DNA of 16,705 bases, from the NCBI RefSeq assembly GCF_006345805.1, contig NW_021825066.1, forward strand, positions 1 through 16,705, read 5' to 3'. The notes below the pieces were generated by a model. The model made no database searches. It was not told the origin of the DNA and saw only the letters and a list, made by a program, of their open reading frames with translations. Below, one piece after another: positions 1-16,705 of the stretch. Position 1 is the stretch's first letter; each line of letters starts with the position of its first letter. The translations under genes and the position numbers were made by a program. The DNA comes from Octopus sinensis (taxonomy: Eukaryota).

Positions 1-133
1 AAAACCGTGGACCATCTTGCGACGCGATGCAGTAGAATGCTAAATTCAGATTATACCAGAAGGCATAACGAGATTGTGAGGTGTGTTCACATGCACTTGT
101 GTCGGAGATTTGGAATGAAGAAGTGAAGAAGTC
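1..133 (+). mobile_element. 3' end of an upstream copy of the endonuclease-less R4-like retrotransposon (CCHC/RHN region), joined to satellite
   Basis: 1-133 reads identical to 4377-4509 (KTVDHLATRCSRMLNSDYTRRHNEIVRCVHMHLCRRFGMKK*), including the TGA and the junction GAAGAAGTC|CACATATCTTACGTTTAGGG. Confidence 0.9.
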
Positions 134-1577
134 CACATATCTTACGTTTAGGGACTTTCAAATTGCATAATTTATTACGCAATTTATTACATAATCTCAA
201 ATACCCACATATCTTCACGTTTAGAAACCTTCCTAAATTGCATAATTTATTACGCAATTTATTACATAATCTCAAGTACACACATATATTACGTTTAGGG
301 ACTTTCAAATTGCATAATTTATTACGCAATTTATTACATAATCTCAAGTACCCACATATCTCACGTTTAGGGACCTTCCTAAATTGCATAATTTATTACG
401 CAATTTATTACATAATCTCAAGTACCCACATATCTTCACGTTTAGGGACTTCCCCAAATTGCATAATATATTACGCAATTTATTACATAATCTCAAGTAC
501 CCACATATCTTCACGTTTAGGGACTTCCCCAAATTGCATAATATATTACTCAATTTATTACATAATCTCAAGTACCCACATATCTCACGTTTAGGGACCT
601 TCCTAAATTGCATAATTTATTACGCAATTTATTACATAATCTCAAGTACAAACATATCTTACGTTTAGGGACTTCACCAAATTGCATAATATATTACGCA
701 ATTTATTACATAATCTCAAGTACCCACATATCTCACGTTTAGGGACCTCCCTAAATTGCATAATTTATTACGCAATTTATTACATAATCTCAAGTACCCA
801 CATATCTTCACGTTTAGTGACTTCCCCAAATTGCATAATTTATTACGCAATTTATTACATAATCTCAAGTACCCACATATCTCACGTTTAGGGACCTCCC
901 TAAATTGCATAATTTATTACCCAATTTATTACATAATGTCAAGTACACACATATCTTACGTTTAGGGACTTCACCAAATTGCATAATATATTACGCAATT
1001 TATTACATAATCTCAAGTACCCACATATCTTCACGTTTTGGGAATTTCAAATTGCATAATATATTACGCAATTTATTACATAATCTCAAGTACCCATATA
1101 TTTCACGTTTAGGGATCTTCCTAAATTGCATAATTTATTACGCAATTTATTACATAATCTCAAGTACCCACATATCTCACGTTTAGGGACCTTCCTAAAT
1201 TGCATAATTTATTACGCAATTTATTACATAATCTCAAGTACCCACATATCTTACGTTTAGGGACTTTCAAATTGCATAATATATTACGCAATTTATTACC
1301 TAATCTCAAGTACCCACATATCTCACGTTTAGGGACCTTCCTAAATTGCATAATTTATTACGCAATTTATTACATAATCTCAAGTACCCACATATCTTAC
1401 GTTTAGGGACTTTCAAATGCATAATATATTACGCAATTTATTACCTAATCTCAAGTACACACATATCTTACGTTTAGGGACTTCACCAAATTGCATAATA
1501 TATTACGCAATTTATTACATAATCTCAAGTACCCACATATCTTCACGTTTTGGGACTTTCAAATTGCATAATATATT
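134..1577. repeat. Satellite array 1, 72-75 bp monomer, about 20 copies
   Basis: Consensus AAATTGCATAAT(T/A)TATTACGCAATTTATTACATAATCTCAAGTACCCACATATCT(T/C)ACGTTTAGGGAC plus a variable 4-6 nt pyrimidine-rich tract. TTGCATAA cores at 163, 238, 310, 384, 459, 534, 608, 682, 756, 831, 905, 979, 1052, 1126, 1200, 1272, 1346, ~1417 (degenerate), 1491, 1564. Confidence 0.98.
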
Positions 1578-4509
1578 TAAAAAGATTTTTTGTTTAGTGG
1601 TGTAAGGATGGTTGGTTTTTCTCAGTCTGGAAAAGTCATTTCCATGGACGCATCCACAGAATACCAAGTAAATGACGCTCAAGAAAATGTGGATTTGTCT
1701 GTTCATGGCTGTCTTAATGCCCCTGTCAAATACAATGAAACTCAGCAGCTCTCGTCAACTTTGTTATCCTTAAAAGCTATTTGTGAGTCTATTGATTCGC
1801 CCAACCCAGGAGAGTGGATGTCATCTCTTTTGAACTATGTCAAAGATCGTCTCAAGCGAGTACCTAGGGGAGGGTGGCCACTTATGGCCAGCTATTTTAA
1901 TTCTAAATTGGTAAGAAAAATCGATATTCGAATTGAAAAAACTTGCTACTACTTTCCGCGGAAATAATGAAATCACCAAAACTGGACATAATATGAATAG
2001 AAAATTACCTGATTTGACACTGTACAACAAAATTTTTGAAGAATTATTAATTCAAATTGATCAAAATAAATCAATACCAATCGAAGAAAGGAAGCAAACA
2101 AGAAAGATTCAATCTCAGCATGTAAATCATGAAGTGATTGAAATGATTAATAAAGCCCTAATTGAATACACGTCGAATAACATTCCTGCAAGTATTGAGG
2201 ATATTTCGTCTTTGATATACTCAGCACAATGTGTATATCAACAGATATCAAGTAAATTGACATTCAAGTCGAATTGGAAACAAAAAATCCAAAATAAAAT
2301 TGAATCTTTGATGGAGAATGATCGGTTAATATCAAAGCATTTTATGTCCACCACTAAAGATGAGGAACGGAAGAAAGCAGTAGACATTCTCTGCTCCTAC
2401 AATTATAAGAAGTCTAAAAGGGGGGAGTTTGAGAGAATATCGTCTACAATAAATGATCAAATCAAAATTCTAAACAAAAAGTTATCAGTTTCAGATTCAA
2501 GAAGGCAATATGGAATAGATAATAGAAACTTCGAGTTGAACAGAAGATCGTTCTACAGAAAGCTGAATCCCAATTCTGATAACAAACAAATTGCTGGTTT
2601 TGACTCGTCTGAGTGTCTCAAGTTTTGGGTGATGTTTGGAAGAAAAGGGATAAAACTGATTTGGGCCTTGGAGTGAACAAAAGAGTAACTGGAGTGGAAG
2701 ATAATGCACCTGACGTTAGCGACGAGTTTATATCAAACTTAATTGAGTACCTTCCTAATTGGAAGGCTCCGGGATGTGATGCTGTGTACAATTTCTTTAT
2801 CAAAAAGCTGGACTCTCTTCACAAATTTCTTTTCCAAGAGATCAGAAATATTATTAATGGTGTCAGTCAACCACAAGGATGGTTTTACACTGGAATTACA
2901 TTTTAATCCCAAAGAAAGCAAACTCTGTTGATCCGAAGGACCTTAGACCAATTACATGCATGCCGTGCTTATATAAATTGGTCACAAAATGTGTGAACGA
3001 AAAAATCGCTGTATATGCTGATACTTACGATCTGATAACGGAGTTCCAGTTGGGATCTAAACGCCATTGCCAAGGAGCAAAGGAATTAGCGCTTCTAAAT
3101 AGACGCGTTAATGAAGTTTATGGAAACAAATTATTATGTGCATGGATCGACGTAAAGAAAGCTTTTGACTCAGTGAGTCACGAATTCTTTTTGAAGTTTT
3201 GGAAAACTCAGGACTACCTAAATGGATAACGAAATTTATGATGTCAATAATTCCTAACTGGAGAGTGTCGTTAAGATTAGGAAAAGAGCTGCTTGGAACA
3301 GTTAATATTGATCGTGGTATACTCCAAGGTGACTCACTGTCACCACAGTTATTTGTATTGGTCTTGGATCCATTAAGCAGGATTTTATCTTTAAAATATC
3401 CGAGTATGTCAATCAATACTGGTGAAGACAAGTCCTTAACCTTTTCTACCAATCATTTTCTATTCATCGATGATTTGAAGCTTTTTGCTCAGAAGGAAGA
3501 GACACTGGCACGCATGATGGAGGATGTGAACATTTACTTTAAACTGGCTGGTTTGGAGAAGAATTTTGAGAAATCAGCGACAAATTGTTATTTGTTGAGG
3601 AATGAAGCTACATTAATGGATGGACTAGATAGCTATCGCTATCTGGGGGTGCTAGAAGACAGATGCAGTAATGTTCTTAAAGAGGATGTACTCAAAAATA
3701 TTAAAGAAGAAATGCAAAAGCGTATTGGAAGACTATCGGAAACTAAACAAAATGCAGTCAATCTATTTAGAGCAATTAATGAGCATGCTCTATCGCTGAT
3801 TAACTATTATATCGGTCTACTCGATCTGGAACCATCTTGTTTCGAAGAAATGGACAAGTTTGTCAGAAAGCTGTTGGCTGATTTGAAAATTCACATGAAG
3901 CCAGCCTGTAAAGAAAGACTGTATCTGCCAAGAGATACACTTGGAAGGGGACTTGTATCAGTTGCCTTTAAGGCGGAAAAAATGCTGTTGGACTTCAAAA
4001 CCAATTTGGAAAGGCGAAAGTTAATCTCCTTGAGAAAAGCAGCAATTTTGTGGGCCGAACAGAAAGGAAAACCCATATGGCCACAATCACAGAATTCCTG
4101 CATTGTAAATATGGAACAACCACACTCGATGAGATTGCTAAATCACTACGTGACTTGCAGATAGAGTCACTGTTGCTTAGTATTAAAAAGAAAAGGTTGC
4201 ACTCGAAGCTATTTGAGTCGCTTGAGAATAATACTTTTGATATCCCAACATCTTCAACATGGCTAAAGAAAGGGAATATATCTCCTAAATCTGAGGCAAT
4301 GTTCTCTTTTCTTCAAGACAGAAACGTCTTTTTCAGAAACTCTGATGAAAAATGCCCACATTGTAAATCCTCGCCTAAAACCGTGGACCATCTTGCGACG
4401 CGATGCAGTAGAATGCTAAATTCAGATTATACCAGAAGGCATAACGAGATTGTGAGGTGTGTTCACATGCACTTGTGTCGGAGATTTGGAATGAAGAAGT
4501 GAAGAAGTC
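1578..4509 (+). mobile_element. R4/Dong-clade (RLE-type) non-LTR retrotransposon, near-complete 5' end, truncated before the endonuclease domain
   Basis: Non-satellite block between arrays. RT motifs across overlapping ORFs: LPNWKAPGCD, DLRPITCMPCLYK, WIDVKKAFDSV, GILQGDSLSP, HFLFIDDLKLFA, YRYLG, RLYLPRDTLGRGL, then CPHC...HLATRC...RRHNEI. The PD-(D/E)xK endonuclease expected after RHN is absent. Confidence 0.88.
1608..4502 (+). pseudogene. Retrotransposon RT ORF (about 965 codons) split by five single-base frameshifts, ending in TGA 7 nt before the satellite
   Basis: ATG at 1608. The six ORF pieces (1590-1967, 1933-2676, 2613-2906, 2879-3229, 3199-4164, 4050-4502) all overlap, so there is no internal nonsense codon. 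Shifts can be placed in homopolymer runs at ~1920 (A5, +1), ~2628 (G3), ~2902 (T4), ~3188 (T5) and ~4063 (A3). It may be intact in vivo. Confidence 0.75.
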
Positions 4510-7075
4510 CACATATCTTACGTTTAGGGACTTTCAAATTGCATAATTTATTACGCAATTTATTACATAATCTCAAGTACCCACATATCTTCACGTTTAG
4601 GGACTTCCCCAAATTGCATAATATATTACGCAATTTATTACATAATCTCAAGTACCCACATATCTCACGTTTAGGGACCTTCCTAAATTGCATAATTTAT
4701 TACGCAATTTATTACATAATCTCAAGTACCCACATATCTTACGTTTAGGGACTTCCCCAAATTGCATAATATATTACGCAATTTATTACATAATCTCAAG
4801 TACCCACATATCTCACGTTTAGGGACCTTCCTAAATTGCATAATATATTACGCAATTTATTACCTAATCTCAAGTACCCACATATCTCACGTTTAGGGAC
4901 CTTCCTAAATTGCATAATTTATTACGCAATTTATTACATAATCTCAATTACCCACATATCTTACGTTTAGGGACTTTCAAATTGCATAATATATTACGCA
5001 ATTTATTACCTAATCTCAAGTACCCACATATTTCACGTTTGGGAACCTCCCTAAATTGCATAATTTATTACGCAATTTATTACATAATCTCAAGTACCCA
5101 CATATCTTACGTTTAGGGACTTTCAAATTGCATAATATATTACGCAATTTATTACCTAATCTCAAGTACCCACATATTTCACGTTTAGGGACCACCCTAA
5201 ATTGCATAATTTATTACGCAATTTATTACATAATCTCAAGTACACACATATATTACGTTTAGTGACTTCACCAAATTGTATAATATTTTACGCAATTTAT
5301 TACATAATTTCAAGTACCCATATATCTTACGTTTAGGGACTTTCCAAATTGCATAATTTATTACGCAATTTATTACATAATCTCAAGTACACACATATCT
5401 TACGTTTAGGGACTTCACCAAATTGCATAATATATTACGCAATTTATTACATAATCTCAAGTACCCACATATCTTCACGTTTAGGGACTTTCAAATTGCA
5501 TAATATATTACGCAATTTATTACATAATCTCAAGTACCCACATATCTTCACGTTTAGGGACTTTCAAATTGCATAATTTATTACGCAATTTATTACATAA
5601 TCTCAAGTACCCACATATCTCACGTTTAGGGACCTTCCTAAATTGCATAATTTATTACGCAATTTATTACATATTCTCAAATACCCACATATCTTCACGT
5701 TTAGACCTTCCTAAATTGCATAATTTATTACGCAATTTATTACATAATCTCAAGTACCCACATATCTTACGTTTAGGGACTTTCAAATTGCATAATATAT
5801 TACGCAATTTATTACCTAATCTCAAGTACCCACATATCTCACGTTTAGGGACCTTCCTAAATTGCATAATTTATTACGCAATTTATTACATAATCTCAAG
5901 TACCCACATATCTTACGTTTAGGGACTTTCAAATTGCATAATATATTACGCAATTTATTACCTAATCTCAAGTACCCACATATTTCACGTTTAGGGACCA
6001 CCCTAAATTGCATAATTTATTACGCAATTTATTACATAATCTCAAGTACATAAATATATTACGTTTAGTGACTTCACCAAATTGTATAATATTTTACGCA
6101 ATTTATTACATAATCTCAAGTACCCACATATCTTACGTTTAGGGACTTTCCAAATTGCATAATATATTACGCAATTTATTACATAATCTCAAGTACACAC
6201 ATATATTACGTTTAGTGACTTCACCAAATTGTATAATATTTTACGCAATTTATTACATAATTTCAAGTACCCATATATCTTACGTTTAGGGACTTTCCAA
6301 ATTGCATAATTTATTACGCAATTTATTACATAATCTCAAGTACACACATATCTTACGTTTAGGGACTTCACCAAATTGCATAATATATTACGCAATTTAT
6401 TACATAATCTGAAGTACCCACATATCTTCACGTTTAGGGACTTTCAATTGCATAAATATTACGCAATTATTACATAATCTCAAGTACACATATCTTCACG
6501 TTTAGGGACTTTCCAAATTGCATAATATATTACGCAATTTATTACATAATCTCAAGTACCCACATATCCACGTTAAAACTCACGTTTTTAGGGACTTTCA
6601 AATTGCATAATATATTACGCAATTTATTACATAATCTCAAGTACCCACATATCTTCACGTTTAGGGACTTTCAAATTGCATAATATATTACGCAATTTAT
6701 TACATAATCTCAAGTACCCACATATCTTCACGTTTAGGGACTTTCCAAATTGCATAATTTATTACGCAATTTATTACATAATCTCAAGTACCCACATATC
6801 TCACGTTTATGGACCTCCCTAAATTGCATAATTTATTACGCAATTTATTACATAATCTCAAGTACAAACATATCTTACGTTTAGGGACTTCACCAAATTG
6901 CATAATATATTACGCAATTTATTACATAATCTCAAGTACCCACATATCTCACGTTTAGGGACCTCCCTAAATTGCATAATTTATTACGCAATTTATTACA
7001 TAATCTCAAGTACCCACATATCTTCACGTTTAGGGACTTCCCCAAATTCCATAATATATTACGCAATTTATTACA
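4510..7075. repeat. Satellite array 2, same monomer, about 35 copies
   Basis: Continuous tandem copies; an irregular monomer at ~6560-6600 and a cluster of 1-nt deletions at ~6440-6500. Confidence 0.98.
6933..7075 (+). repeat. Left copy of a 143-bp direct repeat flanking the CRE fragment (candidate TSD; right copy 8153-8295)
   Basis: 6933-7075 reads identical to 8153-8295, including the rare variant AAATTCCATAAT, which I find only at ~7044 and ~8264 in the arrays. Confidence 0.65.
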
Positions 7076-8152
7076 GAGATCTACAGAGTAAAGTCAACAA
7101 ACTAATAAATTCTCCCAGCGAGACGGAGGGAACAGCTGTTGCCACGCATGACAGCCAGCAGGATCCTCTGAATGAGGAAAGTAAATTCCCTAGGGTCCTT
7201 GGACCGCGAAGAACAAAGATGTCCCAATTTCTTTAGGGAAGTGAGGGTCCCGGAGCCAAAGACGCCGGAAGTCTCGACAACGATTGGCCAAAACCAAAAG
7301 TCATCCATCAAAGACTGATATTTCCGGCACTTCGAAAGCTCAGCTTTTAGCACGAGACCCAGCAAGAGAGCCGATTCGTTGATGAAAGACTTTGAGAAGG
7401 TATCCACACAAGTGGAATCCCAGACCAAAGGTCTCCCAGAATAAAACGAGAACAACGTAGAGCCGTCCGGCCTTTTCCCGTCACCACGGTCGAGACCCTT
7501 AGGCTCAAGGACAGAAGGGTAGCCGGCCTTTTCGAGTGAGTCGAGAATGATTCTGTTAATCGCCGAATGGCGTGGAATACGACCCGCGCTTTTCTTGCAG
7601 GAGAGGGCATGGAGCCCGTATACGTCCATAGTAGATCCGCACCGGCAGGGGTGGGGACTACAGATCGGAAGTCCGAGGCGGAGGCAAATGCCAAAACGGA
7701 GGGCGTCGGAGTCAAGACAGGTGTCCAAATGGGTCGAAGGAAGGCAGTTAAGCCAAGAGCCAGAATGCGGTTGGCGGCTGGCACGGTAACAAGCCAGTCT
7801 GTGCTGGTTCAGGAGAGCCTCCAACGAGTCCGCATGATGCTTACTAAGAATTTTATCCCATTCACGTTGGAGGGACCTATCAGAAGGGAACTCAAGCCCT
7901 TTTTCCTTCCAAAGCAAAAGTGCAGAATTAATATCAGAGTCCAAACGAGATCCGGGCGATTTTTCAAGAATCTTATGGACAAGAAGATACAATCCTGAAG
8001 ACGATGAAAGGAAAGCGGGAAGAGAAATGTCGAGAGCCGAGCGGAGCCCAAGCCCACCAAAAGGAACAGGAAGTTTGGCCTGACGCCAACCGACATCATC
8101 GAACTTGACGTTAAAAATAATCTCGGCTGAAGAACGCACCAGAGCGTCAAAA
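7076..8152 (-). mobile_element. 5'-truncated CRE-clade (CRE/SLACS/Cnl1/MoTeR-like) non-LTR retrotransposon: end of RT thumb, CCHC finger and restriction-like endonuclease
   Basis: Minus-strand frame open from 8152 to the stop at 7102: WRQAKLPVPFGGLGLR, HSGSWL, LRLGLP, CRCG...HALSC, RH, EP, RPDG, WD, KCRKY, VETSGVFG, QRI..AV.RGN. Visibly more GC-rich than the flanks. Sharp junctions TTATTACA|GAGATC (7075/7076) and GTCAAAA|CAAGTACCC (8152/8153). Confidence 0.88.
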
Positions 8153-8918
8153 CAAGTACCCACATATCTCACGTTTAGGGACCTCCCTAAATTGCATAAT
8201 TTATTACGCAATTTATTACATAATCTCAAGTACCCACATATCTTCACGTTTAGGGACTTCCCCAAATTCCATAATATATTACGCAATTTATTACATAATC
8301 TCAAGTACCCACATATCTCACGTTTAGGGACCTCCCTAAATTGCATATTTTATTACGCAATTTATTACATAATCTCAAGTACACACATATCTTACGTTTA
8401 GGGACTTCACCAAATTGCATAATATATTACGCAATTTATTACATAATCTCAAGTACCCATATATTTCACGTTTAGGGATCTTCCTAAATTGCATAATTTA
8501 TTACGCAATTTATTACATAATCTCAAGTACCAACATATCTCACGTTTAGGGACCTTCCTAAATTGCATAATTTATTACGCAATTTATTACCTAATCTCAA
8601 GTACCCACATATCTCACGTTTAGGGACCTTCCTAAATTGCATAATTTATTACGCAATTTATTACCTAATCTCAAGTACCCACATATCTCACGTTTAGGGA
8701 CCTTCCTAAATTGCATAATTTATTACGCAATTTATTACATAATCTGAAGTACCCACATATCTTCACGTTTAGGGACTTTCAAATTGCATAATATATTACG
8801 CAATTTATTACATGATCTCAAGTACCCACATATCTTCACGTTTAGGGACTTTCCAAATTGCATAATATATTACGCAATTTATTACATAATCTCAAGTACC
8901 CACATATCTTCACGTTTA
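8153..8918. repeat. Satellite array 3, about 10 copies
   Basis: Same monomer; ends at CACGTTTA (8918), then unique sequence. Confidence 0.97.
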
Positions 8919-9091
8919 AATGTGTCATATTCCTCAGAAATAGTATTGCCGTGTTGCAAGAAAGGTACAATATTTCGTTTTATTCTTGATATTGTTCCTT
9001 TACTTGTGTTGTACTTTTTCATTAGTTGCCTCTCAGATAAATTTTTCTTCAAAATTTCTTTAGCAATCTTCAATTTAGTTTCGTAATCCAT
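8882..9091 (-). pseudogene. Truncated pogo-type transposase N-terminus (HTH_psq/CENP-B_N-like DNA-binding domain) running into satellite
   Basis: MDYETKLKIAKEILKKNLSERQLMKKYNTSKGTISRIKRN fits the K-x-x-I...S-x-R-x-L-x-K-K-Y-x-x-S-K-x-T-I-S-R-I-K pattern. The last ~12 codons are satellite-derived. Confidence 0.65.
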
Positions 9092-9337
9092 AACCACAAC
9101 AATAAAAATATAAATTGAAAATAAAACAAAAAATAATTAATTTATTATAATTTTATTTTATTTTTAATTCCTTATAAATGATTTTATGGTGCCCCAAAAA
9201 TTCCATAATTTTTTATCGATTTTTATTTTTTTTCTGCCAAAATGTACTTTTGGAATAAAGTGCCCCAAATTGCGGGGGTGCCCCAAAATCCGAGGGTGCC
9301 CCACCCCTGGGGTTTGCCCCATTTTGGGGTCGGACTG
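8919..9337 (-). mobile_element. 5' end of a pogo/Tigger-like (Tc1/mariner superfamily) DNA transposon, truncated by the satellite
   Basis: Minus strand begins TA|CAGTCCGACCCCAAAATGGGGCA (TA at 9338-9339). TGCCCCA motifs at 9190, 9261, 9279, 9297, 9315 (last four with exact 18-bp period). Followed by a CENP-B/psq-type HTH ORF. Confidence 0.7.
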
Positions 9338-9386
9338 TATAGTCAATATTTTAAATGGTCAACCTGTACAGACATCTTCAAGATAA

Positions 9387-10124
9387 ATAAAATATAAATT
9401 AACTAAAAAATCCACTAAATTTATTGTCATTGATGACTGCTTATACCTCAAAGACGAAAGATTTCAAAAGCACAAACTAGTTATTTGCATGGATAATGAG
9501 AGTGAGATGCAAACTATTGCAGATTCTATTCACCGGAATAGCCATTCTGGAATTCGTAAACTGCAACAGGAATGTTTACACTCCTATTTTACAATAAAGC
9601 GTAAAATTATCGAACGAGTCGTCAAAGTGTGCTCAATATGCAAGTTTTCCATTCCACTTAAAGTATAAAATAAAAAACTTATATGGCAGGTTTCAGATTC
9701 TAAGTACCATGTGATTGCCAAAAGATCAAATGAACGATTCCAAGCAGACCTTATAAACGTTAAAAAATTTAACGATTCGAACGATGGCTACATATGGATA
9801 TTTACCGTCATTGATGTTTACAGTAAGTATGCCATTTGTAAAGGAGTTAAAAATAAATCTGCAATAAGTATATTTATGTTTTATATTGGAATTTAGATAT
9901 TTGTGAGGCTTTCGAAGAAATTTGTTCAGAAATCGGCTTTTGCGAGATTCTACAAACAGATAATGGAACTGACTTTAGGAATAAATATCTCGATTCTTTT
10001 TGCACGAAAAACAAAATCCAACATATTTACGGAAGACCAAATCATCCTCAATCACAAGTAATGACACAATATTTATCTGTTTCAGGGCATCGTGGAAAGA
10101 TTTAATCAAACTTTAACATGCTAG
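9387..10124 (+). pseudogene. Retroviral-type (rve) integrase with H2C2 finger and DD35E triad, split by three 27-29 nt introns (Ginger/GIN/KRBA2-like); no start found, stops soon after the catalytic E
   Basis: Removing GT..AG introns 9663-9689, 9868-9896 and 10058-10085 gives ...HRNSHSGIRK...CSIC...ERFQADL...VIDVYSKY...ILQTDNGTDF...PNHPQSQGIVERFNQTLTC*, with exactly 35 residues between the second D and the E. Confidence 0.8.
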
Positions 10125-11328
10125 ACAACTTGGATGCTAGTGATTTTATATTGAATTTTTCTGATTAGAAATCAATGCAATTAAATTAATTATTAAATTT
10201 GACAGTCACCATGACAGGCATTATTATTTATTGACAGGTGACATGTAACCACCATGGGATGGGTAGCTTGTGTGGGACGCGACATATTAATATGTGACAT
10301 TTTTTTATTGATTTTCTCATTTTGATAGTAAATCTCACATCTTAAGTACACGCTACATTGTTCCTTAGTTTGAGATAGAAAAAAAGGTTTAGAGAAGGTC
10401 TAACAAGTTAATATAGTAGACCATCATGGGAGGCAGTTGTCCTGGAAAAATCAGGTTGATTGGTTGCACACACGTGGAGATCTCGTTTTTTGTGAAAATA
10501 AAAACGCATTTTTAGACTTGAATATGAACGCTATTATTTTAGAAGTGATTTGTTATGTTGCTTGCCACTAAAGTTAGTTTTTTTGATTTATTTGATCAAA
10601 TTGAGTAAGCTACTTCCGTTTGATTTATTACAATAGCGGACTAAAATTGATCCAAACTTGATCCTGAAGGCCATCGCACGTGGTGCAGCCACTAGAAACG
10701 AAAATTCAGCCATTTGAGTTCTTGTGGTGCTTTTTCTTGAGTCACGCTAACAAACTTTAAAGGACTAACTATTAAACACTGTCGGTTATGTGCTCGGTGA
10801 CCATTCACAAGGCTTCCGACTCTTTGTCTAGGATAACACTAAGTAGGAAAGTATTTCTCAGCAATTTTCCTTCCATCCTAAAAAAGTTTCTCCCCCTTTG
10901 ACAATCCTTCAAATCCATTTTTGTTGAATTCTGAATCTGTATGAAAATTGATTTACGATTATCGTACTTCTTTCCGCATTCATATCCGAATCCTAAAATC
11001 GGCCCGTGTTTCGGTGGCCCTAAATTTATCCGCTCTAATTGAATCTGTCATTTTCAATCCATTCGTTTTTAATTAGAATCGTTTTTAATTGGAATCGGGT
11101 AACAGTAGTGAGGGAATTGTCGGTCTCCATCCTATTCATGTGGGAGACTTAATTTCCGACACTGATAGTACTGAAATCACCTTTTAAATGCTTTCACTAA
11201 GCAATTTATCCCTAAGTGGAAAAATTTCTGATCATGCTAGAATTCTGTTCTTTTCCGCGAATAATACAGCCCTGGGAAAAAAGATACTGACAGCAGGCCT
11301 AGTGCTGTTGGAAAAAAAATTTTAACAA

Positions 11329-11980
11329 TCACCGTATAGTACAAAGTTGAGTGAATTCAACAGAAGAAAAGTCCAAATCCTCATAATTAGCAAACCTAAT
11401 CGCTGGTCCTCTCAACATAATCTGTCTTATATTTACATTCCGTCCATTGTATTCATTGTCAGCAATCAACACCTTATTATATATTATATGTAATATACTT
11501 GTATCATATATGTCTTATGGAATCTTCCATCGTGCTCAGAATTGTCGCCTGGCAGAGGGATCACAACCCAACCAGAGAACGTGTTGATTTTATTTTGGCA
11601 AAGTAAAGTCAGATTGGAATGACTCGACCCAGACATGATTATAATACTAAAGTATATAAATATTTTTATCTTTAAATAAATACTGTGATGGGGTGTAGCT
11701 TTCGTCACGTTTGTAGTCCACAAAAAGGCAAACGTCAACGACGGTCATTAGTCGATTAAACTGGATATTAATATGGTGAGGTTTCTTGCCATCACTTTGC
11801 CAATATGTGACGAGAGAACCATCGATCATCGAGTTAACATTGTGATCTAATATGCTGAGCACTCCTTGAACTTTTTTTTGCAGAAGAAACGGAAATAATT
11901 CCAAGGCGGGTAATGTCACATAACTTTATTCCGTTTGGTTCATTTCCAATTGAGTTCGCCTTTATGCGACTAAATACCAT
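11329..11980 (-). CDS. APC10: Anaphase-promoting complex subunit 10 (DOC1), 4 exons, 187 aa
   Basis: Exons 11980-11872, 11846-11684, 11646-11499, 11472-11329 (564 nt); introns of 25, 37 and 26 nt, all GT..AG. Spliced protein: SVSSAKK...TYWQSDGKKPHHINIQF...VDYKRDESYTPS...SGWVVIPL...MIQVLIADNEYNGRNVNIRQI...CTIR*, colinear with the APC10/DOC domain. Confidence 0.92.
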
Positions 11981-13178
11981 CACAATAACTATAATTTCAA
12001 AAATATTTATTAAATATTGTGTGAAAATTTTAAACTTGAACTTTTACATAAATAATAATTATTATCTTTTCAACGGTTTAAAATAAACTCACTTTTAACA
12101 ATCGTCTTGAGCTCAATTCAACTTGGTGTCATTTTGGTAGATCAGAAGCATTTCCTGAACATGTCCTTTTGGCATTATGCTTCTAATTCCTGCAATTCTA
12201 TCTGTCTTTTCGAATGAATTAGTGGCATTCTCTCAAGAAGTGTTCTTAGTCTGCTGATTACACACGTATATTTTTATATTATCGTGCGTTACCACCAATA
12301 TTTGCAGAATTATCACAATTACGTATCTGTTCTTCTATAAAAATGTGCCCTTCTTTGTTCTGTTTGTGCCATCTTTTTGCACATCGATTTTGCCAAGATC
12401 TATGGAAACTGTGAATGCACTCTCTTTTCGGATTTTTCTTACTAGGCAGCTTTGCTATGCGGCATAATTTGTCGAGTTTAATTGAATTTGAGAGCGAGAA
12501 AGGGCAGCAGAGTTTGATAGGGTGTTTAATAAGTGTCAGCAAGACATCGATAGACTAGAAGGTTGCTGTGTTACCTATTTACTGGCATTCCACGCTAACA
12601 CACTCACATAGGCGACCAAATCCAATGAAGAATATTTAAATCGCATGCAAAAAATGGAATCAGATCTAGAAATAGCGGAAGGTCTGCTTTTCTCAATATT
12701 TGCTCAGGTATGCTGGAAAATGAAATTGATACAATCTCATTTGATACATTTGACGATGAATGGAATGACATGAATTCCATTTAACTAATATCCATTATTA
12801 TTGGTCTCTAACCATTCCCTGGATCATTTAACAACACTATTTTTATTTCACTCTAATATATTTATAGAAGAACTGATGTCAGAGAAAAGAATATACAAAG
12901 AAATAAGCGCCAATATTGATTTAGAATACGCAAAACTTGGAGGATTCTGACTGAAACTAATTTTCTAACATTATTTTTAATTTAATTTCTAACAGTTTTT
13001 TTAAACCAAATTAACAATTATTTAAACCAGGTGTTCTCAACCGGGGGCGAAAATTTTGTACAGGGGGGCGATAATATATTTAATAAAATATTCGAATTTT
13101 AATATAATACAAGCATTTATACATGTTAATTTTAATAATGTTTCGGATTTATTAATATTTTTTCTATAGTTTCAGATA

Positions 13179-13763
13179 ATGTTTCAGATTGATCCGTTTT
13201 CTTTGTTTAATATGTGTTATATTGATGTTATAAAAAATTATATTATAATTTTTCCCATGTTTATTGTAGGTAGTACATACGAAACAACTTTAAGAGAACT
13301 TCTAGGAAGTGATACAATCGGGATAATATCATTTTTTAAGGCAAAAGGACTAATGAAATCAAAAATGATGTGTGTTTACTGCAGAAAAGAAATGGTTTGG
13401 GTTTTCAAGCGTACCTTATCTGACCAATATACTTGGAAATGTCAGAATCAAAACTGTTCAAAATACAAGACCACATTGTCAATACGAACAGGTTCTGTTT
13501 TGGCTACTTCGAGTATAAGTCTCAAAACATGATTAGATATTTTGTATAGGTGGAGCAATGAAGAATCAATTGTTATGATTAAAAAATCACTGACTGTATC
13601 ATCTCCAACACTTATAGAAATTTTTAAAACCATTAGAAAATGTATTAACAGACACTTTGAAAGTAATCCCGTAAAATTGAGTGGAGAAAATGTAGTCTGC
13701 CAAATCGATGAAAGTCTCTTTTGTCATAAACAAAAGTTGATTTTTAGTTTTACATTATTTTAA
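13179..13763 (+). pseudogene. 5' half of a Merlin/ISXO2 (IS1595-like) transposase inside the hAT element
   Basis: CVYC...YTWKCQNQNC...SIRTGS zinc ribbon, an HTH-like segment, then KLSGENVVCQIDESLF (first catalytic D). In-frame TGA at 13530-13532 where W is plausible; sequence breaks off after CHKQK. True start uncertain. Confidence 0.75.
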
Positions 13764-13790
13764 TGTTTTCGTCGAATGTTTGACATGTAT

Positions 13791-13874
13791 AAATTTAGGG
13801 GCGTTTGTTTAATATGTGTAAATTTAGGGGCGTTTGTTTAATATGTGTAAATTTGGGGGCGTTTGTTTAATGTG
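13791..13874 (+). repeat. 29-bp tandem repeat, about 3 copies, in the hAT subterminal region
   Basis: AAATTTAGGGGCGTTTGTTTAATATGTGT at 13791, 13820 and 13849. Confidence 0.9.
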
Positions 13875-14024
13875 ATCCCAAAAAACAACCAATTAAGGGA
13901 CAATGCCCAAAAATTTTTAAATTGTATGTGGACAAGGGGGCGATAAAATATCTAAGGGGGCGATGAACAAAAAAAGGTTGAGAATGTCTGATTTAAACTA
14001 TTTTGAGAATTAGGAACAAATGAG

Positions 14025-14095
14025 AGCAGCAAGATCAGGCGAATATGAGGCAGTACTTTTTTTGCCAAATTCTTTCAAGAGACATTTTATCACCC
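14025..14095 (-). pseudogene. Possible mariner transposase remnant
   Basis: Minus strand KCLLKEFGKK / VLPH / YSPDLAA, in shifted frames, resembles the mariner WEVLPHPPYSPDLAP motif. Confidence 0.35.
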
Positions 14096-14693
14096 TGACT
14101 TTAGAGACCAGGTCAGCAGATGGCTTTTTTGTTGTTAGTCAACAATTCTTGCTCGTGGCAAATAACAGCTCTTATTATTTGCTTATTTTCAACAATTTGT
14201 GATAGATTATTACTTTGACATCGCACAATATATCTTTTGTGATGAAATCAAGTTTTTGGTCGATAAACTGACTGTTCTCGACTAATTTAACAACAATGGA
14301 GTTCAGAGGAGTGCTAAAAAAATCTGTTTTTCATTATTTGTGACAATCCCGTCAAAAGATATTTTAGAAATTTATTTAAAACAACTCGTTTAAAACTCAT
14401 TTCCCAACAAAAACAAATTTTCTAATAACTGGTGTATGCAATTTACTTCGTTGATAGATTCTCGGAGAAAAAAATTAACTAATTCGAATCACATGTTTTA
14501 ATTATTTTTGTTTGATTAATATTTTTGTCAAAGTAGCCATCAAGAATTTCCATTGATCTTAAGAATTACTGCAGAATAAAATTGTCGCTATAATCCTAAT
14601 TTAGCTATATGAATACATTTTTAATTCCTTTTCGAAAACTTTTTATTTTTAATTTTTTGACAGATTTAGATTATATTTTCGTTTTCAGATATA

Positions 14694-15834
14694 CAGTCGG
14701 GTAGAGATAATACAGTAAAAATAGTTTAACAAAAAAATATTTTCTTGTAAAAAAATTAAAAATATTCCAAGGCAAGAAATATCACACGAATTTTTCACTA
14801 ATTATTATCTTAAATGACAAATTGTGTCTTTTCTTAAATTTTTCAAGCAAACCATTGAACCTTTGAATGGAATACAGTTCGGAATTCCTAACTACTTTTA
14901 TAGCAACGTTTTTTAAGAATAGGTCCAGAGACTGGAATAAATTCTTTCCTTGCTTTTAAAAAACATTCATAAACAAATTTTATCGAATTTCTGCGACAAA
15001 CTGTCTCTTCTCTGTGAAATTCGACTAAGACAATTTAACAGCGGCGAATCATGCAATCAATGAACGACTTATTGGTGGAAGCAGCCACCACGAGACATCA
15101 GAGGAACCTGTCGTGGACACAAACGCTGTATCCCGGCCATTAGTCTGGCAGAAGGAGGCGGATCGGAAACAAAAAGGAGGAAGCTGAAATAAAGATTATC
15201 TGGGAGTGCTCCAAAAATAGATGTGCCCCAGTGAGGAGGTCCTCCCCAAATGGATGTTGCACTGCATAATTAATTAATGCTTCTTCTCTTTTCAGGACAG
15301 CTACTCCGTTGACTAATCTGGTTCTTTTTTTTATATTTTGTTAAGAAAACTGACTTCTCTTCAGGTTAACTGACACTCCCAGCTCTCCTCCAGTAATACG
15401 ACTATTTGTTTCCTTCGCAACTTGGTGGTTGTCAACCTTCATGACATGTCTGTGTACGGAAAACATGCCCTTCAACGTTTCCTTTATTGTCACTGATTGA
15501 ATGTACGCCTCAGTCAAAACATCTATACTCAACTTTTTCATTTAAAACTTGTAGAACTTTGTAACAACTCCATCCCATGTCAATAAGACAGGGATTATCG
15601 TGTTTGGTGGATTTGTGCCAATTCTCCATTAAGTAGATCATACTTGTAGAATTTCTCTACTTCGACTTGCTTAAAGTTGTCTTGGATGTGATCCCAAATT
15701 GGATTATATTTGTCTCATTTTTTGTTTTATTAAAGACATAAATATCTGGCATGTTGTTTTTAACTTGACTATCAGTTTGAAACGTGGTGTCTACTCTTAT
15801 TTAACACAAGTATTTGTCACGACCGACTGAACTG
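14694..15834. mobile_element. Possible decayed Tc1/IS630-like element
   Basis: TA|CAGTCGG...AATAC at 14692-14713 and GTATT...CCGACTG at ~15810-15829 form a weak inverted pair. The internal minus ORF 15341-15541 only loosely resembles a Tc1/IS630 HTH. Confidence 0.25.
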
Positions 15835-15838
15835 TATA

Positions 15839-16380
15839 CAGTAAAACCTCTGATGCTCGCCATCTCTGTTACTCGCCACCTCTATTGCTCGCCACATATT
15901 ATTATCGGCAACTGCCGTAGAAACATAATAGTTATATTTCCACACGTGCGGCACTTGAAACGTTGACACCGACCCGAATTTGAAGGACACTGATTCTATC
16001 GGAAACACTCCAGCACCGAAATATCCCACGTGTAAGCTTCCTGTGAACGGCAAACCCCTGTCCATAGTGGCTTGATGTCGATGGCAGTAAAATAAGCCTG
16101 TAGTCCCCACGTTTTAGACATAGTGCAATAGAGGGATGTCACCACCTCAACCAAGAGATATTTTTCAACATATTTTTCAAAAAAAGTGGCTCCATTTTCT
16201 TTTGTTTTTCATTTTCTCGCCTGCTTTTGTGATGTTTTTCAAAACAGATTCACAATTTTCAGATGAAATATTATCCGAGTTTGCTTGATAACAAATTTCC
16301 GCGTTTTCATCTTCAGCGTCAAAAGCCATTAGACCTTCAAGTTGTTTTGTATTTGGCAGAAAATCACTTCCATAATTCAT
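15839..16380 (-). mobile_element. Terminus of a second pogo/Tigger-like element, possibly with an acidic transposase C-terminal remnant
   Basis: TA|CAGTAAAACCTC at 15837-15850, followed by three 16-bp repeats A(C/T)CTCTnnT(G/A)CTCGCC at 15846, 15862 and 15878. Minus ORF 16177-16380 is acidic and ends K-rich ...SHFF*. The partner TIR is not in the window. Confidence 0.4.
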
Positions 16381-16705
16381 AAAAATGCTGAATGGTCTAT
16401 GCTTTGTAGTTGCATGGACCGTCTTATTATGTCACAGGCCCTGGGCATTACCGAGCGCTAGACGCGACTTTGACGCCTAACAAGCCTGTCATCAACAAAT
16501 ATATTTATTAAATTATTTAAAATTTTAACATGATTTAAAATTAAAATTTAAATAACTTAAGTTTTCCATTGAATCCCATAAAATAATTTATAAGTAGACC
16601 TTAATATAAAAAGTAAAATCAATGAATACTGAACGCTAATTTGGTTTAGGTTGTGAGGGGGGTAATAATTTGACAGATCTCATTGCTATTTCTCGTTTCA
16701 ATCTC

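Follow-up and report, generated by a model that had tools for sequence, protein, structure and literature searches.

A 3'-truncated R2-superfamily LINE copy whose junction with a 74-bp satellite occurs twice: a probable genome scar duplicated at the DNA level

Introduction

How does a reverse-transcriptase gene that lacks an endonuclease come to end in satellite DNA, and to do so twice within the same array? The question is raised by the first lines of a stretch of 16,705 nucleotides labelled Octopus sinensis (RefSeq assembly GCF_006345805.1, contig NW_021825066.1, positions 1 to 16,705; hereafter, the window). A sequence-only reading of this DNA had proposed two answers: either a one-off microhomology junction (AAGT/CCAC) was amplified at the DNA level, or the truncated element and the satellite form a self-propagating unit that extends the array by reverse transcription. 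The features needed for weighing these proposals are as follows, L001 being an "Octopus sinensis" contig that carries a sister copy of the element:

1..132, + strand: 3' end of an upstream, identically truncated LINE copy, interrupted by the start of the window (1-200 identical to 4377-4576)
133..1577: 74-bp satellite, array 1, 19.6 monomers (TRF, monomer list)
1578..1584, + strand: TAAAAAG, filler at the 5' junction, separating satellite monomer position 45 from the element start (sister homology begins at 1584)
1585..4508, + strand: LINE copy, R2-superfamily (Dong/R4-like), 5'-complete (ORF pieces, RVT_1, identity with L001, alignment of relatives)
4493..4508, + strand: tandem 8-nt duplication, GAAGAAGT followed by GAAGAAGT, at the truncation point (window 4480-4520 against L001 12870-12920)
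4509..7075: 74-bp satellite, array 2, 34.8 monomers (TRF, monomer list)
7076..8152, - strand: 5'-truncated fragment of a second non-LTR element, GC-rich (~50%), inside the satellite (ORF 7102-8151)
8153..8918: 74-bp satellite, array 3, 10.3 monomers, where the satellite block ends on the right (TRF, monomer list)

Results

The LINE copy comprises a short 5' UTR, an N-terminal region, the reverse transcriptase (RT), a thumb/linker and the CCHC and RHN motifs, and is cut before the nuclease core; the 3' UTR is also lost. Its reverse-transcriptase ORF runs from the ATG at 1608 to a TGA at 4500-4502 through five frame changes. It is tiled by six overlapping pieces (1590-1967, 1933-2676, 2613-2906, 2879-3229, 3199-4164 and 4050-4502, in frames 0, 1, 0, 2, 1 and 0), each of them stop-free up to its own end, so the ORF does lack an internal nonsense codon, as had been claimed. 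RVT_1 was matched in 2879-3226 and 3199-4161 (E = 1.8e-9 and 1.8e-11, respectively). The C-terminus reads ...CRRFGMKK, with the stop 15 codons past the invariant RRHN. Aligned with the sister copy and 14 full-length relatives, the window copy retains the invariant C317, C320, H329, C334, R345 and H346, that is, the CCHC zinc knuckle and RHN are present, and it is without the nearly invariant P402, D403, K434, K437 and Y438, all of which lie in the missing C-terminal part together with the nuclease core.

The search for an endonuclease-containing parent was successful: L001 9977-12897 matches window 1584-4500 at 99.6% identity, with 3 substitutions in ~2.9 kb and 8 one-nt indels, and this sister has the full nuclease. 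It passes the junction point uninterrupted (...GMKK-SKRLKNHS...) and continues for 168 more codons, to a stop at 13404-13406; past the window stop point, the sister and the 14 full-length relatives have ~150-170 further residues. Both the CCHC knuckle and a restriction-like endonuclease (RLE), with the conserved KPD...E...K...KY, are present in L001 11802-13403. Since searches of the PDB by sequence alone gave no match for the parent C-terminus, nor for the 150-aa C-terminal piece of the window, a fold search was needed. The structure model of the sister's C-terminal ORF (534 aa) had a mean pLDDT of 79.3, with block means of 85-96 for residues 361-500. Its top matches were R2 proteins (9nl2, E = 6e-13; 8gh6, E = 8e-11; 459-487 aligned columns), followed by PD-(D/E)XK cap-snatching nucleases, the C-terminal half of the sister matching the R2Bm, R2Tg and R2Pm structures in fold. 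A family profile run against the PDB matched LINE-1 ORF2p and R2 proteins (E = 1e-40 to 1e-25), and the nearest protein relatives, at 45-55% identity, are unnamed elements from microsporidia, mites and Lepidoptera. The family belongs to the RLE-bearing LINEs of the R2 superfamily and the window copy is a truncated member; the class test covered membership of this R2-like, RLE-bearing group, the Dong/R4 label being taken from the RepeatMasker label of the literature, which describes Dong-R4 LINEs as abundant in octopus genomes, with recent activity (PMC13282606).

The nuclease is present in the sister and in 14 of the 14 aligned full-length relatives and, judged by these alignments, the window copy lacks it through a truncation private to itself, which does not characterise the family. 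Of the earlier description, an R4-clade ORF with its start and RT and no RLE, the ATG, the RVT_1 domain and the absent nuclease core stood; an endonuclease-less lineage did not, since the sister carries the nuclease.

The single long ORF of the window copy (1608-4502) is broken only by 1-nt homopolymer shortfalls, which differ between the two copies: all 8 indels are of this kind, of which the window copy has six and the sister two, and every one disrupts the frame solely in the copy bearing it. Because they are private 1-nt shortfalls in homopolymer runs, the frameshifts are probably long-read assembly errors. The coding differences between window and sister (2 non-synonymous, 1 synonymous) are too few for an informative dN/dS. 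The frame is open because the copy is very young, and no selection is needed to keep it so, given that the nuclease loss is private to a copy only 0.1% diverged from its sister. Homopolymer-length errors are also seen in the ANAPC10 gene of the same assembly.

The LINE/satellite junctions lie at 132/133 and 4508/4509. The identical junction thus occurs twice, as had been stated, but one base away from the positions given then (133/134 and 4509/4510). Positions 1-200 equal 4377-4576 exactly, over 132 nt of element and 68 nt of satellite, with the first mismatch at 201. The upstream copy includes the coding region of CCHC/RHN, both copies of GAAGAAGT (117-124 and 125-132) and the TGA (124-126), and window 1-124 is also 100% identical to L001 12774-12897. 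What is seen repeated of the composite unit proposed earlier is only its 3' junction, since no more than 132 nt of the upstream copy lie inside the window.

The parent has one copy of GAAGAAGT, then CCAAGAG. The anatomy of the junction is accordingly AATGAAGAAGTCCAAGAG in the parent and AATGAAGAAGT-GAAGAAGT-CCACATATC in the window, with CAAGTACCCACATATC in the satellite. Element and satellite have an AAGT/CCA microhomology at the window junction, and the breakpoint is ambiguous over 4508-4511 because CCA is common to both. The TGA straddles the duplication boundary, that is, the stop codon was created by the 8-nt duplication; it closes the ORF before the satellite, as previously noted, at a spacing of 6 nt rather than 7 (CCACAT begins at 4509). 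Taken together, duplication and microhomology are the trace that one event of end joining or template switching would leave.

On the left of the element the satellite ends at monomer position 45, and on the right it starts at position 1 of the next monomer; when joined, the flanks keep the phase of an unbroken paralogous stretch (5360-5509 and 5538-5687), less the 28 nt that lie between its two parts. A candidate 'target duplication' of 45 nt flanking the element (1533-1577 and 4509-4553, 42/45) was no better than generic monomer similarity. The 5' flanks of three copies (window 1560-1584 and, in L001, copies A and B) are AT-rich with no clear common motif, and only ~25 nt upstream of the ATG are common to the three.

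Such flanks would suit a one-step origin, in which parent RNA was reverse-transcribed from a free 3' end at a satellite break by way of internal CCA/AAGT annealing. This endonuclease-independent internal priming would produce a 3'-truncated, 5'-complete insertion with a 28-nt target loss, the composite still being duplicated at the DNA level. A single 28-nt gap suffices for flanks at position 45 and position 1 of the next monomer, and the 3' junction, with its microhomology, and the 5' junction, with its filler nucleotides, likewise speak for it; endonuclease-independent LINE-1 insertions are reportedly 3'-truncated and microhomology-joined. However, the periodicity of the satellite makes 28 nt indistinguishable from 28+74n nt, and a directly adjacent 8-nt tandem duplication is better known as a footprint of DNA end joining. 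We know of no description of endonuclease-independent internal priming for RLE-type elements, and consider this origin possible but doubtful.

Monomers are ordered differently in arrays 1 and 2, which are also unequal in length, and each array carries variants of its own; the TRF counts of the two fit the ~20 and 35 monomers reported before, and the 68 nt of satellite covered by the identity agree with the earlier view that they diverge after the first ~65 bp. The first monomer of array 1 (133-204) belongs to a rare 72-nt variant whose one other occurrence is at 4509, and a first monomer unique in the window to the two junctions points to a single origin. Past the 68 nt common to both arrays, resemblance falls to the level of any in-phase pair of satellite stretches, the true partner coming second among 30 (score 811, against 814 and 799); one alignment had suggested that arrays 1 and 2 stay colinear after the first monomer, but other in-phase pairs aligned at least as well. 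Shuffled exact blocks of up to 246 nt are common to the arrays at many offsets, array 2 has internal segmental duplications (e.g. 5212-5457 = 6165-6410), and the second LINE is bounded by a perfect 143-bp target-site duplication (TSD; 6933-7075 = 8153-8295). Shuffled blocks and a LINE inserted with a 143-bp TSD mark the array as an active site of DNA-level rearrangement and transposable element (TE) insertion. There is no third unit at +4376, the satellite running on to 8918 with the other LINE interrupting it. A derivation of the satellite from the element's UTRs was rejected, as the monomer had no above-chance match to the parent or to the rest of the window.

The composite might also exist only once, the first ~200 nt or the whole of array 1 being a mis-join or an uncollapsed read end in a satellite assembled from error-prone long reads. 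The window does start within a repeat, satellites are classic sites of misassembly, and there are homopolymer-length errors in both the LINE and ANAPC10. Against such an artefact, which we regard as improbable, the differences in length, monomer order and private variants between arrays 1 and 2 are unlike a simple duplicated read end.

The truncated units visible, one complete and one a 132-nt partial, lie in the same array and in the same orientation. When the C-terminal piece, the RT piece and the gene model P0078 served as queries, protein searches gave no further near-identical copy, the next-best 'Octopus sinensis' protein models being at most 74% identical. Exact look-ups of the truncated ORF, the junction-spanning ORF and the GC-rich LINE ORF in protein collections gave no match, nor did the junction 28-mer AATGAAGAAGTGAAGAAGTCCACATATC or a satellite 28-mer in viral, metagenome and prokaryote genome collections. 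No trace of the 74-bp satellite was seen at five other loci of the LINE family (~80 kb), three of them loci of diverged family members.

These results bear on the telomerase-like model, in which the satellite end of the transcript would anneal to broken satellite and the element's own nuclease-less RT would extend the array. The same junction in two units, an identity that stops 68 nt into the satellite as if a short RNA satellite tail had annealed to array DNA, and the retention of RT, thumb and zinc knuckle with no nonsense codon would all be expected of it. Against it, (i) the nuclease lack is a private lesion of a copy that is barely diverged from a nuclease-bearing sister; (ii) the 3' UTR, through which R2-type proteins recognise their own RNA, is deleted too; (iii) just two units are seen, in one array and one orientation, with no third downstream; (iv) the family's other loci are free of the satellite, and protein collections hold no near-identical truncated ORF; and (v) shuffling of the arrays at the DNA level requires no RT. 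The proposal of a self-propagating, endonuclease-less unit found no support, and we hold it very improbable.

The best explanation, to which we give a probability of roughly 0.7, is one truncation event followed by DNA-level duplication of the LINE copy within a heavily shuffled array, and the endonuclease-bearing sister, the microhomology with its 8-nt duplication and the array shuffling all favour this first of the two earlier proposals. In a first step, a full-length copy would have retrotransposed into the 74-bp satellite, leaving a complete 5' end and a junction at monomer position 45. In a second, for which the junction is seen directly, break repair would have fused the element after the ...GMKK codon to a downstream monomer start, using the AAGT/CCA microhomology and leaving behind the 8-nt templated duplication; the loss would have covered 168 codons, among them those for all of the nuclease core, as well as the 3' UTR and 28 (+74n) nt of satellite, and the TGA would have arisen by accident. 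Templated short duplications are known from alternative (polymerase-theta-type) end joining, although reverse-transcriptase template switching can also yield an 8-nt duplication, and the truncation may therefore have been one-step. In a third, the composite of truncated element and satellite would have undergone one or more DNA-level duplications, through unequal exchange or replication template switching inside the array, with reshuffling of the arrays afterwards.

A counterpoint to this explanation is that the shared flank is just 68 nt, the arrays beyond it not being specifically colinear. Unequal exchange would consequently need a crossover in the first monomer or later array turnover, and the element parts of both units show zero divergence despite the turnover that it may require. 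The 68-nt flank would be accounted for at least as well by an RNA-templated copy whose end lay in the first monomer. The second unit might then have been made from a read-through transcript ending in that monomer, annealed to a free satellite end and reverse-transcribed by its own nuclease-less RT or, in trans, by intact members of the family; we think this very improbable. If it were true, RT-satellite composites could seed or extend satellite arrays without an endonuclease, and the RNA-mediated reading would offer a testable route to retroelement-driven satellite growth.

Discussion

On the best reading, the truncated copy is a dead-end, 3'-truncated product of a young autonomous, single-ORF R2-superfamily LINE (Dong/R4-like), and the 'endonuclease-less' retroelement is an ordinary genome scar, not a new mode of satellite growth. 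Comparison with known systems shows both similarities and differences: (i) Like R2-superfamily LINEs, the family has a single ORF, an RVT_1 RT, a CCHC knuckle with RHN and, in the parent copy, a PD-(D/E)XK nuclease; the window copy differs in having neither nuclease core nor 3' UTR, and no insertion target is common to the three copies. (ii) Endonuclease-independent LINE-1 insertions reportedly occur at DNA breaks and telomeres. The window copy resembles them in being 3'-truncated and microhomology-joined, with target loss, and possibly primed from a pre-existing end, but those are sporadic repair events of an APE-type LINE, whereas here an RLE-type element would have been inserted in this way once at most and then copied as DNA. 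(iii) In Athena-type Penelope-like elements and other nuclease-less retroelements associated with terminal repeats, the 3' end of an RT gene without nuclease likewise borders on short tandem repeats. Athena is said to show the missing nuclease and a repeat-complementary 3' tail as traits of the whole family, across many independent copies located at chromosome ends; here, in contrast, the sister has the nuclease, and one junction was duplicated once in an internal 74-bp satellite. (iv) Composite TE-satellite units are known, for example, as the 'composite elements' in the human T2T repeat annotation and as TE fragments in satellite higher-order repeats. A fixed TE-satellite junction repeated with its flanking monomers, and segmental duplications in the arrays, are features in common; two units, no regular period and spacer arrays of 1.4 kb and >2.5 kb are not.

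The locus is a worked example of how a young LINE copy can be deprived of its nuclease and 3' end where microhomology joins it to a satellite, how an 8-nt repair duplication can generate a stop codon, and how duplication of an array can carry along the resulting scar. It also calls for caution, as a missing endonuclease, an open frame and a 3' satellite need not mean a distinct lineage.

As regards other features of the window, an Rfam search found no ribozyme and no other RNA family, and the ORF of the second LINE has 49% amino acid identity to the RT protein of L001 8144-9682. The host genes within the window have introns of 26-37 nt, which points to a dicyemid parasite of the octopus, rather than the octopus itself, as the source of this DNA. 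As a matter of data hygiene, Octopus sinensis-labelled contigs with this LINE family may derive from its dicyemid kidney parasite.

Layout of the window and the repeated junction

The window is AT-rich eukaryotic DNA, organised as follows:

1-132: RT gene, 3' end
133-1577: 74-bp satellite, array 1, 19.6 monomers
1578-4508 (+): RT element (the window copy)
4509-7075: 74-bp satellite, array 2, 34.8 monomers
7076-8152 (-): GC-rich LINE fragment
8153-8918: 74-bp satellite, array 3, 10.3 monomers
8919 onward: mixed stretch of host genes and transposon remains

The RT ORF of the window copy begins at ATG 1608, identical to the start of the NCBI gene model P0078 (XP_029657786.1), and six overlapping open pieces carry it to TGA 4500-4502 with no stop en route; pieces 4 and 5 match RVT_1. 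The first 200 positions recur without a mismatch at 4377-4576, so the window has two instances of the element-satellite junction (132/133 and 4508/4509), each with 68 nt of satellite. The sequence-only reading, which had described a start, an RT, no internal nonsense codon and a junction seen twice, is borne out to within one base. Only 132 nt of the upstream LINE copy fall within the window, and no third composite unit (truncated LINE plus adjoining satellite) lies downstream of the second within it.

The LINE family carries an endonuclease

A HMMER search of the whole library with the 321-aa RT piece returned 2,248 relatives. The full-length ones (proteins P0001, P0002, P0005, P0014 and others; 960-1,400 aa) all extend beyond the final residues of the window ORF, with a common C-terminal order: CCHC, RRHN, ~40 residues, NKPDI, (I/V)(E/D)VG(I/V)T, E-EK--KY, WDG and YIQ. 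The window ORF retains the invariant C317, C320, H329, C334, R345 and H346, and stops 15 codons past the invariant H346 region, short of the nearly invariant P402, D403, K434, K437 and Y438. Contig VCDQ01010986.1 (L001) of the Octopus sinensis assembly, reached through P0078, contains an endonuclease-bearing parent or sister of the kind that had been envisaged: copy A (L001 9977-12897). Between it and window 1584-4500 there are 3 substitutions and 8 one-nt indels (99.6% identity). Where the window copy is truncated, copy A stays open (...GMKK-SKRLKNHSVQ...NKPDIFLYD...) until a stop at 13404-13406, and AT-rich DNA follows. The 534-aa C-terminal ORF of copy A was modelled with AlphaFold (mean pLDDT 79.3; block means 85-96 across residues 361-500), and the model's best Foldseek matches are R2 retrotransposon proteins (459-487 aligned columns), PD-(D/E)XK cap-snatching endonucleases ranking after them.

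Foldseek matches of the copy A model to R2 proteins
9nl2, E 6e-13
8iby, E 1e-11
9dou, E 2e-11
8gh6, E 8e-11

Because copy A reads through, its predicted fold matches R2 and the relatives share this C-terminus, the family is an ordinary LINE of the R2 superfamily bearing a restriction-like endonuclease (RLE). The earlier description of an endonuclease-less element thus holds for the window copy, which lacks residues 366-534 of copy A's 534-aa ORF (every strand of the nuclease fold) and the entire 3' UTR, but fails as a family trait, since copy A and the full-length relatives read on. Placement in the R4 clade is plausible, as Dong-R4 is the RepeatMasker label for abundant young LINEs of octopus (PMC13282606).

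Outside octopus/dicyemid contigs, the nearest relatives of the LINE protein (45-55% identity) come from microsporidia (Nucleospora, Hamiltosporidium, Vairimorpha, Pancytospora), Babesia, mites and Lepidoptera, a patchy, parasite-rich spread that might reflect horizontal transfer. P0001 (XP_029654503.1), the NCBI model of a related full-length element, has at its N-terminus a Pfam match to the Ets DNA-binding domain (E 1.4e-18) and is probably a chimeric prediction fusing a host exon to a LINE ORF. In L001, positions 4686-13550 are nested transposons: copy B (-), a GC-rich LINE (+) and copy A (+), the last directly 3' of the A-rich 3' end of the GC-rich LINE. An ORF at L001 15782-16273 (+) with a rhabdovirus spike glycoprotein fusion domain (Pfam, E 3e-6) is possibly an endogenous viral fragment.

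Formation of the junctions

The parental sequence (copy A) reads ...GGAATGAAGAAGTCCAAGAGACTG..., the satellite ...CTCAAGTAC CCA CATATC..., and the window junction ...GGAATGAAGAAGT GAAGAAGT CCA CATATCTTACG... Element AAGTCCA overlaps satellite AAGT(AC)CCA at the junction, and GAAGAAGT is tandemly duplicated in the window copy (4493-4500 and 4501-4508). TGA 4500-4502 straddles the duplication boundary, so the stop codon is a by-product of the joining event and not a trait of an endonuclease-less gene. Alternative end joining typically leaves microhomology with a short insertion templated from neighbouring sequence, and would account for the junction; RT template switching could produce an identical signature. 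The overlap and the 8-nt duplication, seen against copy A, agree with the one-off microhomology junction (AAGT/CCAC) proposed by the sequence-only reading. A 72-nt monomer variant opens the satellite after both junctions and occurs nowhere else in the window; the junction therefore has a single origin.

The window copy, copy A and copy B (75% identical, L001 8021-4686) have only ~25 nt in common 5' of the ATG, so the window copy is complete at its 5' end. There the satellite breaks off at monomer position 45, followed by 7 extra nucleotides, and to the right of the element it resumes at monomer position 1. Against a paralogous stretch without an interruption (5360-5509 + 5538-5687), the two flanks joined together lack 28 nt, so the target loss is 28 nt or 28+74n. 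Such a loss fits a single microhomology-primed insertion of the endonuclease-independent type at a break. It also fits a two-step history, which we consider somewhat more likely: a full-length LINE would have inserted into the satellite, and a deletion would then have extended into the downstream array.

Origin of the duplicated composite

Beyond 68 nt, arrays 1 and 2 are no more alike than any two in-phase stretches of the satellite. Within and between the arrays, exact blocks recur in shuffled order at many offsets (for example 5212-5457 = 6165-6410, 1188-1418 = 5704-5934, 602-817 = 6818-7033); unequal exchange or conversion is evidently common here. The simplest reading of the composite pair is duplication at the DNA level. 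Less comfortable for it is a common flank of only 68 nt although the element parts are identical; a crossover within the first monomer, or later turnover, would be needed. This flank would also be expected of a copy made from an RNA template that ended in a short satellite tail, and for that reason we keep some small weight, of the order of a long shot, on the idea that the truncated LINE and satellite propagate via RNA with telomerase-like array growth. However, this self-propagating nuclease-less unit is unsupported: (i) the nuclease loss is private to the window copy; (ii) the 3' UTR is missing from it; (iii) there are only two composite units, in a single array; (iv) the satellite was not found at five other loci of the LINE family (~80 kb); (v) satellite and element have no sequence similarity. 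Protein searches with the C-terminal piece, the RT piece and P0078 found no further near-identical LINE copies, exact look-ups of the truncated ORF, the junction-spanning ORF and the GC-rich LINE ORF gave no match, and junction and satellite were both absent from the DNA collections scanned (viral, metagenome and prokaryote genomes). Taken together, the observation is real, and the window copy belongs to a known kind of LINE; it is truncated, lies within satellite and was probably copied along with it.

The non-LTR fragment at 7076-8152 (-) is 5'-truncated, with ~50% GC in ~32% GC surroundings, and is flanked by a perfect target-site duplication of satellite (6933-7075, 8153-8295) that is unusually long at 143 bp. 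Its protein has a C..C..H..C / RH motif region and 49% identity to the RT protein of L001 8144-9682, which adjoins copy A.

Frameshifts and assembly quality

All 8 length differences between the window copy and copy A are single bases within homopolymer runs, the shorter run always belonging to the copy with the broken frame. Six shortfalls are in the window copy, where two lie close together and leave five visible frame changes, and two in copy A; an A8 run (about 11865-11872) likewise breaks the ANAPC10 frame. The frameshifts look like deletion-biased long-read consensus errors, the assembly appears to carry uncorrected homopolymer errors of this type, and the organism itself probably has an undamaged frame in both copies. 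The 2 non-synonymous and 1 synonymous differences are too few for any inference on selection, and at a divergence of only 0.1% from copy A an open frame is expected.

Host identity

The window contains an ANAPC10 gene (-, within 11329-11980) with GT-AG introns of 37 nt (11683-11647) and 26 nt (11498-11473). Its conserved core matches Pfam without a break only once both are removed (profile positions 41-181 of 185, 123 bits; largest exon alone, 71 bits). An rve-integrase-like gene (+, 9711-10120) has GT-AG introns of 29 nt (9868-9896) and 28 nt (10058-10085), and matches rve 2-102 of 102 with 53.5 bits when spliced and 21 bits unspliced. Cephalopod genes have long introns, unlike those of the window (26-37 nt). 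The latter fit the genome of Dicyema japonicum, a kidney parasite of Octopus sinensis with a mean intron of 38 bp, 36.7% GC, a repeat content of 49% and numerous LINE RT genes (PMC6736024), and the window is thus probably dicyemid DNA. A dicyemid origin may also apply to other 'Octopus sinensis' contigs in which this LINE family occurs.

Two minor features adjoin or lie within the mixed stretch. A small ORF at 8885-9097 (-), inside which the satellite block stops at 8918, has a helix-turn-helix (Trp-repressor-like) Pfam match (E 1e-6) and may be a transposase N-terminus abutted by satellite. Imperfect 27-nt inverted repeats (13016-13042 / 13976-14002) enclose a 29-nt tandem repeat (13777-13871) and two short ORFs with a C..C/C..C zinc-ribbon-like motif (13179-13763); 13016-14002 is probably a decayed DNA transposon.
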